From the sequence record MW349129.1: a stretch of DNA of 64,000 nucleotides, one strand, 5' to 3'. The number at the start of each line of letters is the position of its first letter. Position 1 is the first letter of the stretch. Under the pieces are notes generated by a model. That model was not told the origin of the DNA, searched no databases, and saw only the letters and a program-made list of their open reading frames with translations. Shown piece after piece: positions 51,599 through 62,239 of the stretch. Made by a program: the position numbers and the translations under genes.

Positions 51599-52144
51599 GT
51601 GTTTAAAATTTATCCTGATTATAGTGAATTTTTAAAGAGAGAATTAGACTACTTTGGAATTGATATAGACGATGTAGCATATCATTCTGATATTAATATT
51701 AAAGAGAAATTAGAATCAATTGAAAAGGATGATAATGAAATGGGAATTAATTATTTGAATTTAGGAGATATATCTTTAAATACAGAAGAAACAAGTGGAG
51801 CTATAACTATAAGAGAATTAGTAGACACCATTGATCACTTGATATATACAGAAAATGAAGTCACTCCTTTATATTATTTCTTTATGGATAAAATTGATTC
51901 ACTTCCTATGATTAATATGATCACTTATAAAAAGGCAGCTAATTCATTCTATGAAGAGTATAAAACATATAATACTGGAGATCATTCAGCTTATATAAAT
52001 ATTAAAGGAGAATGGAAACAATTATCATTTAATCAATTTAAAGAATCTTTAAAAGAAGTTTTATTATCTTCTCATAAAGAAAGTAATGTTGATAAATTAT
52101 TTAAAGAGTTAAATAATTTAACTGTAAAAGATAATTTTTCATAA
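51599..52144 (+). CDS. Hypothetical protein (ends VKDNFS)
   Basis: 181-aa ORF, GTG start. Confidence 0.65.
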   Translation: MFKIYPDYSEFLKRELDYFGIDIDDVAYHSDINIKEKLESIEKDDNEMGINYLNLGDISLNTEETSGAITIRELVDTIDHLIYTENEVTPLYYFFMDKIDSLPMINMITYKKAANSFYEEYKTYNTGDHSAYINIKGEWKQLSFNQFKESLKEVLLSSHKESNVDKLFKELNNLTVKDNFS

Positions 52145-52171
52145 TTATTCTTAGATCAAAATTAGTAATAA

Positions 52172-52222
52172 GTATATATTATAAATATGAGACAATGTTC
52201 ATTAACTTGATCATTGTCTCAT
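52172..52222 (+). promoter_or_regulatory. Putative early promoter plus 5' hairpin
   Basis: TATATTATAA (52175-52184)-ata-TG, then ATGAGACAATG/CATTGTCTCAT. Confidence 0.65.
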
Positions 52223-54141
52223 ATATTGTTTTATTTTTTATAAATAAGGAGATGAATTGGATAATGGAAAATAATACATTAAATTCGTATATAAAGGAAG
52301 ATTTTAAATATTTTAAAGATGATAAATTAGAAATTAACGAAATATTTAACTTTAAAGATGATAAGACTAAAGAAAAATTTGAAATGTTTTTTAATGGAGT
52401 TATATACGCATTGAAAAATTTGAATTATGGTGAATTATCTGAAATTTATGATAAATCAATTGAAAAGAAAGATACTAATCAAGATAGAACCGAAAGTTAT
52501 ATAGATTATTTAAATAATGAATTGAAAAATAGAAGACTAAATAAAGAAACTAAAAAACTTTATAAAGATTTATTAATGACTTTAGAAGCTGATTTGAAAA
52601 GATATAATGCTAATTTAGATGACAGCATTATAAATAAATTATTCAAAAATAAGTATATATCAATATCTTATTATAGTTTAATAGTACCTTATAATATTGC
52701 TAACGAAATTGAATTTAATAAAAACTATTATAGTTTTCTTGAATTAGAAGATTTTACTAAATTCATAATATTTCCGTATTATCAGCTTTTATATCTATCT
52801 AAAGATAATTTAAGAAATATTTATATAAAGAATACAGATATAAATCTTCATGATTATTTTATTAATATAATAAAGGATTATATTAAAAATTTAATAGATA
52901 ATAAAGATGTAGATACACTAAAGGAATTATTAGATGTGCTAACAAATGAGCACGAATATCTAAGATCCCCAAAATATACAGACTATAGAAAAGGTAATGG
53001 TAGAAATTTATTTGAGTTGCTAATAGATATGAATTTCAATGAATTTAAAGATATATTATATGAAGTAATATACATTGTAATGAATAATAATCTAAAAAAA
53101 GAATTACAAATAGAAATGAATTATGATATATACAAACACAATATATTTTTAATAAGTTTAATGAATGATGAAGTAGATAGTCATAGACAAACTAAATTTA
53201 ATGATAAATTTTTAATAGAAAATAATAATACAATTAGAGCTACTGCAAGTGCAGACTTATACAGCAAAAATAATTACTATCAGAATAACTTATTAGGACA
53301 CTATATTAATGATCTATATGTAAATAAAAATAAAATAAATAAATTTAAAAGAGTTAATAAAGTTAGAAGTTTTAAATCTTTTATTTATTTAACTAACCAA
53401 AGATGTATTATTGGTGCAGAATCATATTATAAAAAAATATATAAATATTTATTCGATCCTAGTAATTTAACTAGAGAAGAATTTGAAGTGGCTACACTAT
53501 TAATTAAATTAATAACATGTAAAACTAGTAATCAATTAAAGAGAGTTATGGAACAATCTAAAGTCAATTCTGTATTAAATAATTTATTATCTAAAGAAGA
53601 AGTTAATAATATAATTAAAATTGGTATAGAGATGAATATTAATACTATATTCAATGAAAAAGGAGTGAGTAAAATTGATACAGTGGATTTAACTGTAGGA
53701 AATATTGTAAAACCTTTGTTATATAATAACGCAAATGATTATGAAGAACAAACAGAAATCATTAATTCAATATTTAAAAATTTTACTTATGACATAGATA
53801 TCAATTTTGATAGATATCATTATAAAGATTTAGATGAATATTTTGAAACTAGATTAAATTTAGGTCTTTTAAAAGAATCAAATATAGATATTGGCATTAA
53901 TATTAATTATAATAAAATTGCAAAAACTATTGTAAACAACATTAAAGATAAACTTAGAGGAAGATATGATTTTGAAAAGAATGAGTTTATTATTACTTAT
54001 GATAAAATGAATATTACTCGTCTAACTTCTACAGAGTTCTGTAATGGTTTATGTGAATATTTAAGTAAATACTTCCCAGAAGAAGCTAAAAAGTTAAATA
54101 AGAGTTTTAGAGCTGAAATTGTAAATACAATGTTTAGATAA
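52195..54141 (+). CDS. Large hypothetical protein (likely start 52264; ends EIVNTMFR)
   Basis: RBS AGGAGATGA at 52247; long ORF with no recognisable motif. Confidence 0.7.
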   Translation: MFINLIIVSYIVLFFINKEMNWIMENNTLNSYIKEDFKYFKDDKLEINEIFNFKDDKTKEKFEMFFNGVIYALKNLNYGELSEIYDKSIEKKDTNQDRTESYIDYLNNELKNRRLNKETKKLYKDLLMTLEADLKRYNANLDDSIINKLFKNKYISISYYSLIVPYNIANEIEFNKNYYSFLELEDFTKFIIFPYYQLLYLSKDNLRNIYIKNTDINLHDYFINIIKDYIKNLIDNKDVDTLKELLDVLTNEHEYLRSPKYTDYRKGNGRNLFELLIDMNFNEFKDILYEVIYIVMNNNLKKELQIEMNYDIYKHNIFLISLMNDEVDSHRQTKFNDKFLIENNNTIRATASADLYSKNNYYQNNLLGHYINDLYVNKNKINKFKRVNKVRSFKSFIYLTNQRCIIGAESYYKKIYKYLFDPSNLTREEFEVATLLIKLITCKTSNQLKRVMEQSKVNSVLNNLLSKEEVNNIIKIGIEMNINTIFNEKGVSKIDTVDLTVGNIVKPLLYNNANDYEEQTEIINSIFKNFTYDIDINFDRYHYKDLDEYFETRLNLGLLKESNIDIGININYNKIAKTIVNNIKDKLRGRYDFEKNEFIITYDKMNITRLTSTEFCNGLCEYLSKYFPEEAKKLNKSFRAEIVNTMFR

Positions 54142-54157
54142 AAAGGAGAATTTAAAA

Positions 54158-54712
54158 ATGGATTTTAAAAAAACATTTAATACAGATATTATGAAGATAG
54201 ATAGAAGAATTTTCTATAACATCATTAACGTAGAAATGTCTCTTAGTGATAAAAGAAAAATGTATAATAAAGTCAATGATGAAAATGAGATTTTAACATA
54301 TGTATTTGATAATTACACAGATAACGTATTGAGGAATAATGAAGGTATAATGATTATGGCAAAAGATTTAAATGATTTCATTAGACACTCTATTTTCGAT
54401 TACTATTTTTTCTATTTAATAAAACAATTTTTACCTTCTTCCAACTTCCAGAATTTTGAAGATTTTGTCATTATATTAGAAGGAGAACTATTTAAACCTA
54501 AACAAGAAACTTTAAGTCAATTCTCTTCAAAAGAAGATATGATTTATGTGTATTATAATACCACTCTAAATAAAATAATTATTGTTGATCACATTATGTT
54601 CTTAAAAGCTTTAATGGAATATATTAAAGAAGAAAAAGATTTCTATGAAGATTTATATATAGAATTTGAAAAAGAAGTTAAAAAATATTTAGTTGAAAAT
54701 AACTTTAAATAA
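54158..54712 (+). CDS. Hypothetical protein (ends LVENNFK)
   Basis: 184-aa ORF with RBS. Confidence 0.7.
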   Translation: MDFKKTFNTDIMKIDRRIFYNIINVEMSLSDKRKMYNKVNDENEILTYVFDNYTDNVLRNNEGIMIMAKDLNDFIRHSIFDYYFFYLIKQFLPSSNFQNFEDFVIILEGELFKPKQETLSQFSSKEDMIYVYYNTTLNKIIIVDHIMFLKALMEYIKEEKDFYEDLYIEFEKEVKKYLVENNFK

Positions 54713-54729
54713 AGGAGAGACAATATTTA

Positions 54730-61016: not shown

Positions 61017-61028
61017 AACTCAATTTAA

Positions 61029-61076
61029 ATATATATTATAAAATTGTGAAAGATGTATGATACTTATACATCTTTC
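61029..61076 (+). promoter_or_regulatory. Putative early promoter plus 5' hairpin
   Basis: TATATTATAA (61032-61041)-aat-TG, then GAAAGATGTAT/ATACATCTTTC. Confidence 0.65.
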
Positions 61077-61099
61077 TAAAAATATTTATTTAAAGAGAG

Positions 61100-61528
61100 G
61101 TGAAAAAGATAATGAGTTCTAATTTTGATTATTATATATTGCAATCAAATATTTCAGAAGCTAGAAAAAGAGTTAAAAATAATTTAGAAGTAAATGATTA
61201 TATGGTTATAAGGCAAATATTTTTCAGTCATCTAGATTTCAAAGATCATTATAATATGTATCATAAAGTAAATAATGTAGAAGATTATTATAATGATATT
61301 ATATTAGAAAGTATCAAGGATATTATATTTGACGAAAAAGGTAGAATTAATGAAAAAGTGGTATTTAATTTAATTAAAAGTTCTAATTCGCATATATGTG
61401 CTTTAATTAAAGATAATAAAGATAATTACAAAATTTATAAAAAAGATAAATATGTAATTAAAGCTATAGAAGATTTATTATCTGAAAAAGATTATAAAAG
61501 AATATTGGTTAAAAATACTTTTAAATAA
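61100..61528 (+). CDS. Hypothetical protein, paralog of 59133-59588 (ends YKRILVKNTFK; likely start 61112)
   Basis: Alignment by eye to the 59133 ORF. Confidence 0.7.
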   Translation: MKKIMSSNFDYYILQSNISEARKRVKNNLEVNDYMVIRQIFFSHLDFKDHYNMYHKVNNVEDYYNDIILESIKDIIFDEKGRINEKVVFNLIKSSNSHICALIKDNKDNYKIYKKDKYVIKAIEDLLSEKDYKRILVKNTFK

Positions 61529-61573
61529 TTTGAAAGTGGATGCAACTTACTTTTATTATATTACAAGTGAGAG

Positions 61574-62239
61574 TTGGTGATTTTATTGATAAAAATGCAT
61601 TTAATAAACTTTCAAAAAAGATCTATGAATAGTTATAAGAAAAATTTAAACACAATTGTGCTTTTCATAGATTATGATAAAAATATTTTCGACCAAATTA
61701 TTAATCAATTAGATATAAATGTATTAGCCAATGATACTATAAGATTAAATAATGCTAATTATTCATTAATGTTAGATGAAAAAATTTTTAGTTCTGAAAG
61801 GACGACAATTGATTTCTATAATAAAATAGTAAATAATGATATATTAAATATTATTAAAGAAAATATATCTAATGTAGATAATTATTCTAGATTAAAAGAA
61901 ATCAATAATATGACTGATAGTGAGTTTAATGATATTATTAATAAAGATAATTTGTTTAAATGTCAAAATAAATACTTCAGTATGAATAAAGTACCTTATA
62001 TAGAAAAAGAGATACCTGAAAGTTTTTATTTAGATCATTTTAAAGAAATCAATTTAGATTTCATATTTGAGAAGCTTTTTGAAGAGAATAGATATGATGA
62101 AGAAAATTTAAAGTATATTTATACTTTAGCGGAATTATTTCTAACACTTAAACAAGGTAAGAATGTATTTTATAATTATAATAAAGAGATAGATAAGAAA
62201 TATTACAGATCTATATTTATAAATTCTTTATTTAATTAA
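61574..62239 (+). CDS. Hypothetical protein (ends YRSIFINSLFN)
   Basis: 221-aa ORF; start uncertain. Confidence 0.6.
   Translation: MVILLIKMHLINFQKRSMNSYKKNLNTIVLFIDYDKNIFDQIINQLDINVLANDTIRLNNANYSLMLDEKIFSSERTTIDFYNKIVNNDILNIIKENISNVDNYSRLKEINNMTDSEFNDIINKDNLFKCQNKYFSMNKVPYIEKEIPESFYLDHFKEINLDFIFEKLFEENRYDEENLKYIYTLAELFLTLKQGKNVFYNYNKEIDKKYYRSIFINSLFN

Follow-up and report, generated by a model that had tools for sequence, protein, structure and literature searches.

A strictly C-terminal peptide shared by fast-evolving, putatively early proteins of Staphylococcus jumbo phages

The clamp-binding motif of phage T4 is a short acidic/hydrophobic peptide found on a few replication and late-transcription proteins. 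The C-terminal peptide of the single-stranded DNA-binding protein (SSB-Ct) connects one protein to many partners; it is acidic, has Phe as its last residue, and follows a disordered linker. Here, we describe a C-terminal peptide (the tail) shared by many proteins of Staphylococcus phage Madawaska (MW349129.1; 265,446 bp). The DNA analyzed was a stretch of 64,000 nucleotides (the window; positions refer to it unless genome positions are specified), which corresponds to the terminal 64 kb of the Madawaska genome (genome positions 201,447 to 265,446). A preliminary reading of the letters alone (the sequence-only reading) had quoted nine similar C termini, most of them from a 10.6-kb region (51599 to 62239) that proved to be 100% identical to Madawaska. 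It had described an 11-residue motif on about ten otherwise unrelated proteins and had proposed a docking or sorting signal.

Madawaska is an AR9/PBS1-like jumbo phage of Staphylococcus (~265 kb). Ten sequenced Staphylococcus jumbo phages (Madawaska, MarsHill, S6, PALS2, DC4, LY01, SA1, PB50, AH12, and Machias) form a small clade, in which the major capsid proteins of the distant members SA1, PB50, and Machias are 86 to 92% identical to that of Madawaska. Relatives of the clade include AR9 and PBS1, Bacillus phages with uracil-containing DNA and two multisubunit RNA polymerases. The AR9 early promoter, which is used by the virion RNA polymerase that the phage injects, has been defined experimentally as AAATATATATTAT-N6-G (PMC5312081), and the authors who described MarsHill and Madawaska noted this motif upstream of 29 genes in MarsHill (bioRxiv 10.1101/2020.12.14.422802). 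In SA1, 97 genes have been classed as early, 90 of them without known function; the DNA ligase gene is also classed as early (PMC9414953). Lineage-specific expansion of a small family in a jumbo phage is exemplified by Bacillus phage G, with ~35 zinc-ribbon copies (PMC7824862). The literature that we searched nowhere mentions the tail family or its motif, and both appear to be undescribed there.

Extent, number, and register of the tail

The tail was found at the ends of 34 of 280 non-overlapping open reading frames (ORFs), the set analyzed for the whole Madawaska genome, i.e., ~12% or about one gene in eight. All 34 lie on the plus strand, and nine are in the window; the earlier count of about ten carriers was thus too low. 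The full motif is [IL][TS][DE]-E-K-E-[YIV]-K-x-[YI]-L-[VIT]-[KR]-x-x-F-[KR]-stop. The consensus of the 16-residue position-specific matrix reads [T/I/L]-[D/T/S]-E-K-E-[Y/V/I]-K-[N/K]-[Y/I]-L-[V/I/T]-[K/R]-[N/E]-[N/G]-F-[K/R]-stop, and an aromatic pair is frequent a few residues upstream of it. The tail is basic (net charge, +1.7). Its existence was upheld, with a length of ~16 to 20 residues instead of 11.

All nine C termini quoted in the sequence-only reading are present at their stops (25816, 52144, 54141, 54712, 55470, 60550, 61016, 61528, and 62239). Five of them fit the earlier regular expression strictly; those at 52144, 54712, and 55470, and loosely that at 54141, are variants. All nine score >14 with the position-specific matrix, which was built from 25 genome-wide tails, including the four variants. 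The 34 tails score from 6.7 to 39 (14.6 to 39 without three weak variants ending in FI), against 9.3 for the best of 77,266 internal windows. A few tails close with F-I or F-L in place of F-K, and these ends are regarded as interchangeable because the same genes end in F-K in a relative.

Chance and AT-rich composition were ruled out as the origin of the tail by tests against internal windows, shuffled termini, and control segments. The earlier regular expression matches 9 of the 280 C termini and 1 of 78,666 internal windows; 0.004 matches would be expected at C termini by chance, and the mean over composition-shuffled termini was 0.002. An all-against-all comparison of the last 16 residues that presupposes no motif (BLOSUM62 score of >=25) yielded 325 pairs, compared with 9 for control 16-mers, and joined 42 proteins in one component. 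This comparison is equivalent to the check that the sequence-only reading had suggested (MEME on C termini versus shuffled controls), and its outcome was decisively in favor of enrichment.

The position of the tail is fixed relative to the end of the protein. Every ORF of six sources (Madawaska, SA1, PB50, Machias, MarsHill, and one metagenome relative) was rescored with a matrix that was blind to position and to the last residue. In 71 of 71 tail copies, the conserved Phe is followed by exactly one residue before the stop. No internal copies, and no copies with zero or two or more residues after the Phe, occurred among the ORFs of these sources. The bodies of the tail proteins are rich in insertions and deletions, yet the distance from Phe to the end is constant; this fixed register to the free C terminus is therefore the strongest hint that the end is being read. 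The rule of Phe, one residue, and stop fits a free C terminus being recognized, as it is in docking motifs of the SSB-Ct or clamp-binding type.

A C-terminal degron would account for the strict terminal position and the fixed distance to the carboxylate as well. A Clp-type or tail-specific protease of the host or the phage would then clear early proteins on schedule, a special case of docking that would also suit the occurrence of the tail in genes of putatively early class only and its loss or truncation in some lineages (see below). The tail has at least 16 conserved residues, however, and is much longer than known C-terminal degrons of the ssrA or MuA type; it also ends in Lys or Arg, unlike the hydrophobic or Ala-Ala ends of those tags. 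We consider a degron improbable.

Selection on the tail and promoters of its genes

Comparisons among relatives revealed stronger constraint on the tail than on the proteins that carry it. In 15 best-hit pairs between Madawaska and SA1, identity was 65% for the tails, compared with 48% for the bodies (Wilcoxon P = 0.002); these pairs are not reciprocal, and several of them pair SA1 paralogues with one Madawaska gene. For 19 tail-less neighboring genes of the same two phages, the last 16 residues were 61% identical, compared with 70% for the body. In SA1, PB50, and Machias, bodies of tail families are often only 25 to 45% identical to those of Madawaska, with tails almost unchanged, and the tails are also conserved in MarsHill and in the metagenome relative. 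The ratio of nonsynonymous to synonymous substitution in comparisons with MarsHill was 0.36 for the bodies of tail genes and 0.15 for their neighbors. The bodies of tail genes are faster evolving but still constrained.

Conserved gene ends of this kind could in principle be a nucleotide-level signal (a promoter, terminator, translational coupling element, or recombination site) with the peptide as a by-product. Gene ends reading TTT-AAA-TAA resemble the sequence with which the early promoter starts (TTTAAATA), the spacers after tail genes are short (median, 17 nucleotides), and conserved 3' ends could aid the body exchanges described below. Synonymous codon usage in the tails nevertheless equals that of the genome, with a mild excess of TTT over TTC as the sole deviation (chi-square P = 0.03); the substitutions are conservative at the amino acid level (K/R, V/I/T, and Y/I/V/F); and the true promoters are separate intergenic elements downstream. 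These three observations place the constraint on the protein and not on the RNA. A nucleotide-level signal was rejected on the neutral codon use, and we give it next to no weight. The tail is therefore a real, strictly C-terminal element at the peptide level.

A sequence matching the AR9 early promoter (ATATATATTAT-N6-G) lies 55 to 95 nucleotides upstream of tail-gene clusters, at genome positions 100880, 113215, 115873, 120536, 226290, 253621, and 262478. In the window, plus-strand copies of the AR9-type consensus occur at 24841 to 24858 (upstream of the gene at 24923), 52172 to 52189 (upstream of the gene run from 52264 to 56645), and 61029 to 61046 (upstream of the gene at 61112). The DNA ligase gene, the counterpart of which is classed as early in SA1, sits among the tail genes of the window. 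From these promoters and the ligase gene alongside, we infer that the tail genes belong to the early class. Additional copies of the promoter precede tail-less genes (17205, 26795, 36924, 37681, 48970, and 62771, all on the plus strand), including the gene for the beta subunit of the non-virion RNA polymerase at 49051.

Capsid-targeting peptides exist in other phages, a point that counts for a virion-packaging or injection signal, one of the functions that the sequence-only reading had considered. AR9-like phages package proteins such as their virion RNA polymerase (PMC5312081). The promoters at the tail clusters are of the early and not the late class, though, and none of the 34 tail genes is annotated as virion associated. 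The DC4 virion proteome, which is shallow, comprises 15 proteins with no canonical tail protein among them (PMC10638138). The packaging reading is accordingly disfavored, and we judge it very improbable.

Carrier proteins and distribution of the tail

The sequence-only reading placed the tail on otherwise unrelated proteins of different families. This description stands insofar as the bodies lack detectable sequence similarity: after removal of the tail, BLASTP linked only three pairs, and iterated hidden Markov model searches left ~25 separate groups. The 34 proteins had no match in Pfam-A or PHROGs, and searches of NCBIfam and PADLOC gave only isolated single-member matches (E values of 0.001 to 0.01), none of them convincing. 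"Unrelated" is probably too strong a word, however, in view of the gene arrays, the dependence of tails on neighborhood, and a shared N-terminal motif.

The tail genes form same-strand tandem arrays in seven clusters (genome positions 17.5 to 23.9 kb, 92 kb, 101 to 107 kb, 113.3 to 123.8 kb, 226 to 227 kb, 253 to 257 kb, and 261.5 to 263.7 kb). Tail similarity is 32.5 between genes separated by <12 kb, compared with 23.9 in distant pairs (permutation P = 2e-4). The copy number of one array, of the MKYYK type, varies among phages (3, 4, 5, and 1). An N-terminal aromatic pair followed by a turn (e.g., M-K-Y-Y-K-L-x-x-x-G) occurs in 22 of the 34 tail proteins and in 41 of the 246 others (Fisher P = 1.5e-8; the motif was defined post hoc, after inspection of the data). 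It accompanies the strongest tails (median scores of 32.8 with the motif and 17.4 without; P = 0.005). The window proteins with weak tails (those ending at 25816, 52144, 54141, 55470, and 62239) lack it; they are perhaps more remote members, or else independent acquisitions. Comparisons of tail-less family profiles with hhalign gave E values of <0.1 for 17.5% of tail-family pairs and for 7 to 8% of control pairs (P of ~1e-4 to 1e-5); the excess is weak and mostly N terminal, with only one pair at high probability. Because of the shared N-terminal motif and the tracking of tail similarity with genomic neighborhood, most carriers are probably hyper-diverged paralogues and not truly unrelated proteins.

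Tail and body proved to be separable: bodies can be swapped or preserved, with the tail either retained or cut short. The genes at 61112 to 61528 and 59160 to 59588 (both on the plus strand) encode the same body. The first (138 amino acids) has a full canonical tail at 61478 to 61528 (...SEKDYKRILVKNTFK; score, 32.4), and the second, its paralogue, lacks the last ~seven motif residues (...AIEDITNECEVLYFKRS, with ECEVLYFKRS at the end). In SA1 and MarsHill, this short form is itself 88 to 98% conserved. The locus at 61112 holds a different body with the same tail in MarsHill, PB50, and Machias (L074:11433-11837, L009:10479-10895, and L010:10556-10960), an arrangement suggestive of replacement in cassette fashion, for which recombination at the conserved 3' end is a possible route.

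The MKYYK-type array of the window comprises three copies on the plus strand. The tail of copy 1 (59606 to 60055) is shortened to ...VTEKEYKENKDK (EKEYKENKDK): its end was lost in the Madawaska/MarsHill lineage, and SA1 and relatives from sequencing-run assemblies keep the full tail (...EKEYKEHKVVTNFS). The two truncations therefore differ, that at 59160 to 59588 being conserved across distant phages and that at 59606 to 60055 being lineage specific. Canonical tails are present in copy 2 (60074 to 60550, 158 amino acids; tail at 60500 to 60550, ...ITEKEYKNILIRNTFK; score, 36.6) and copy 3 (60567 to 61016, 149 amino acids; tail at 60966 to 61016, ...ITEKQYKNIIVNDLFK; score, 29.9).

The remaining tail genes of the window are also on the plus strand. 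One canonical tail, at 54662 to 54712 (...EKEVKKYLVENNFK; score, 35.7), ends the gene at 54158 to 54712 (184 amino acids), which retains its tail in MarsHill with a body merely 57% identical. The others are weak variants. The gene at 24923 to 25816 (297 amino acids from the annotated start), outside the 51599-to-62239 region, ends in ...FKNEIVANTFK (tail at 25766 to 25816; score, 22.3). The gene at 51599 to 52144 (181 amino acids) ends in ...LNNLTVKDNFS (52094 to 52144; score, 17.2), and its MarsHill orthologue ends in ...NFI. The gene at 52264 to 54141 (625 amino acids from the annotated start) ends in ...FRAEIVNTMFR (54091 to 54141; score, 16.9), and the tail is retained in SA1, Machias, and MarsHill. 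The gene at 54730 to 55470 (246 amino acids) ends in ...VKNKYVSKYFK (55420 to 55470; score, 16.3). The tail of the gene at 61586 to 62239 (217 amino acids; tail at 62189 to 62239, ...KKYYRSIFINSLFN; score, 14.6) is 94% conserved in SA1.

Tail-like ends were also seen elsewhere in the genome. Seven very small consecutive ORFs (63 to 151 amino acids) lie at genome positions 90.5 to 92.7 kb (L002:40492-42734), several with degenerate tail-like ends (...IVKENFK, ...IVKENLK, ...YLVRKNMK, and ...FIRDNLK). One of them might have an orthologue in a basic hypothetical DC4 virion protein of 91 amino acids (UFVDC4_00019). In the window, the interval from 11563 to 15175 includes ~1.3 kb poor in ORFs, followed by a retron-like reverse transcriptase gene (12832 to 14349); the gene 3' of the latter has a weak tail-like end (...REYKKYLPEKILI). 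Tandem Repeats Finder detected no array between 11000 and 13000.

Elsewhere in the window, the beta subunit of the non-virion RNA polymerase has its C-terminal part split over three ORFs (49051 to 50193, 50357 to 51031, and 51164 to 51544), joined in the GenBank record as exons of a single gene. An intein with a homing endonuclease is annotated in the DNA gyrase A gene (30634 to 34188), and annotated introns interrupt the gyrase B gene (22370 to 24807) and the virion RNA polymerase beta gene (34485 to 36846).

Staphylococcus jumbo phages appear to be the only carriers of the tail. A tblastn search of 50,697 phage records with one canonical member matched only the ten phages of the clade, and word-indexed searches of 5.8 billion proteins found only clade members and a few sequencing-run assemblies. 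With a 33-position profile of the tail alone, ten of 1.84 billion representative proteins matched at an E value of <=0.001: nine clade proteins, at their extreme C termini, and one repetitive junk fragment. A degenerate DNA pattern of the tail had no match in IMG/VR, and its 28 matches in bacterial genomes were dismissed as single chance matches. In metagenomes, only two contigs, both from sample Ga0079226, were true relatives. These contigs (L024 and L032) are short, have ~20% GC, and derive from a close Madawaska relative; one carries seven consecutive tail genes. The clade is therefore present in environmental data, despite the lack of an IMG/VR match.

No such tail was found in the first 50 kb of Listeria phage LPJP1, the nearest non-Staphylococcus relative (capsid protein, 47% identical), and an all-against-all comparison of the C termini from positions 1 to 50000 detected no long shared tail. 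In the same region, 21 of 71 ORFs end in Ile, compared with a background of 12.8% (P = 2e-4). Many of these ends read ...[N/S/H]-I-stop and are coded ATA-TAA or ATA-TAG, and they could reflect a different terminal rule or a nucleotide-level effect.

Structural context, interpretation, and comparison with known systems

Structure prediction was attempted for two carriers. The AlphaFold model for 60567 to 61013 (14 sequences) had a predicted local distance difference test (pLDDT) score of 40 and was too poor for a fold search. The model for 61112 to 61525 (6 sequences) reached a pLDDT of 61.7 and a predicted template modeling score of 0.60, with residues 111 to 130 at 83 to 89. In this model, the tail is predicted to form a helix (residues 125 to 136; pLDDT, 72 to 89) directly after another helix. 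The element before the tail differs between the models, being a predicted strand in one family and a predicted helix in the other. A Foldseek search with the 61112-to-61525 model gave a best PDB E value of 1.0 (criterion, <0.001), and its only match in BFVD was its own entry. The start of the motif (T/S-x-x-E) and the N/G before the Phe fit a capped helix of three turns with the Phe folding back, which is the form that the tail probably takes.

The tail is C terminal and basic and has several large hydrophobic residues, features that would be compatible with a membrane-targeting amphipathic helix like the C termini of MinD and FtsA. Its helical hydrophobic moment (at 100 degrees) is 0.19, however, below the 0.31 of the other C termini of the phage, and no flexible linker precedes it. 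Membrane targeting was rejected on the low moment and is extremely improbable in our estimation. In the 24 residues before the tail (positions -40 to -17), G, P, S, and Q together make up 9.9%, compared with 15% in the proteome, and hydrophobic residues make up 43%, compared with 37.5%. With this folded-looking upstream region and a modeled tail helix that would continue the fold, the tail is unlike classical short linear motifs, which sit on flexible tethers.

The non-linker-like upstream sequence and the contiguous modeled helix are what would be expected under the main competing explanation, in which the tail is the structural signature of a family derived from a single ancestor. A C-terminal helix and an N-terminal hairpin would then form the core of the fold, with no external partner. 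The tandem arrays, the neighborhood-dependent tail similarity, the co-occurrence of the N-terminal motif with the tail, and the weak excess of profile similarity among bodies all agree with such an origin. A core helix would be expected to coevolve with its body, yet the tail is nearly constant across ~25 families that cannot be aligned. Bodies also stay conserved with a truncated tail, the predicted element before the tail is not the same in the two models, and a stop fixed in 71 copies is not demanded by a folding role alone. We consider this explanation unlikely, although it is the most serious competitor.

The reading that we prefer, with confidence evenly divided for and against it, is that of a clade-specific, expanded early family in which the conserved terminus would dock on one common partner. 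Repeated tandem duplication, together with some exchange of bodies, would have enlarged the family. Different targets or activities would come from the variable bodies, and the invariant terminus, read end-on by one partner of phage or host origin, would act as a many-to-one docking tag. All tail-bearing early proteins would be brought to that partner, with recruitment, assembly, stabilization, or turnover as the outcome. The proposal of the sequence-only reading, by which the tail would bind one hub, is partly supported by the terminal position, the conservation, and the fixed register.

Several points weigh against docking. The case for it is drawn from conservation and terminal position only. 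The members with conserved truncated tails imply that the tail is dispensable for some proteins. Given the upstream sequence and the helix-on-helix model, the tail may be packed in its own fold and not free to dock. A candidate partner within the same molecule would be the N-terminal motif. Confidence in the two structure models is low or moderate, and no fold match came from either.

A more specific and tentative version of the docking reading, which we regard as possible but rather doubtful, is a phage protein address code. A single receptor (a phage hub or a host chaperone, protease, or polymerase) would read ...F-K-COOH and gather ~thirty early effectors during host takeover. If true, this code would be the bacterial-virus counterpart of the poxvirus PRANC/F-box strategy.

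About ninety early genes of these phages with deoxyuridine-containing DNA have no known function, and approximately one-third share the 16-residue handle, which offers experiments a single way into the study of host takeover. Should the tail be read by one partner, it would represent a rare phage case of a many-to-one C-terminal sorting or docking code and would explain how a fast-evolving arsenal can diversify and yet stay attached to one machine. As a marker, the tail is of practical use for annotation of the family, and it is possibly a portable tag for delivery of cargo to the same partner in the engineering of Staphylococcus aureus phages.

Among known systems, the T4 clamp-binding C termini (gp43, gp33, gp55, and others, on gp45) are alike in their many-to-one logic and in having key aromatic or hydrophobic residues near the C terminus. 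The phage tail differs from them in being basic, 16 to 20 residues long, and present on at least 34 putatively early proteins with no known function, and no sequence resemblance was found. SSB-Ct is likewise strictly C terminal, with a conserved Phe near a free carboxylate that is read by partner pockets; unlike SSB-Ct, the tail occurs on many proteins, is basic, has a penultimate Phe, and follows a folded-looking region. The zinc ribbons of phage G are similar in that one small family has reached dozens of copies in a single jumbo-phage lineage, but there the whole domain is conserved and recognizable, whereas the tail family has only its termini in common and corresponds to no Pfam, PHROGs, NCBIfam, or PADLOC family. 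The E-block of the type IV effectors of the Legionella Dot/Icm system is also a C-terminal signal common to otherwise unrelated proteins (hundreds) and read by one machine; the Dot/Icm signals are degenerate, acidic, and used for secretion, whereas the tail is sharply conserved and basic and has no sign of export. The poxvirus ankyrin proteins carry a C-terminal PRANC/F-box-like module that is folded and binds eukaryotic Skp1, and the phage tail is shorter and unrelated in sequence. As an analogy only, they are the closest in evolutionary logic: a large, fast-evolving viral family with variable bodies and one conserved C-terminal module leading to a single host machine.

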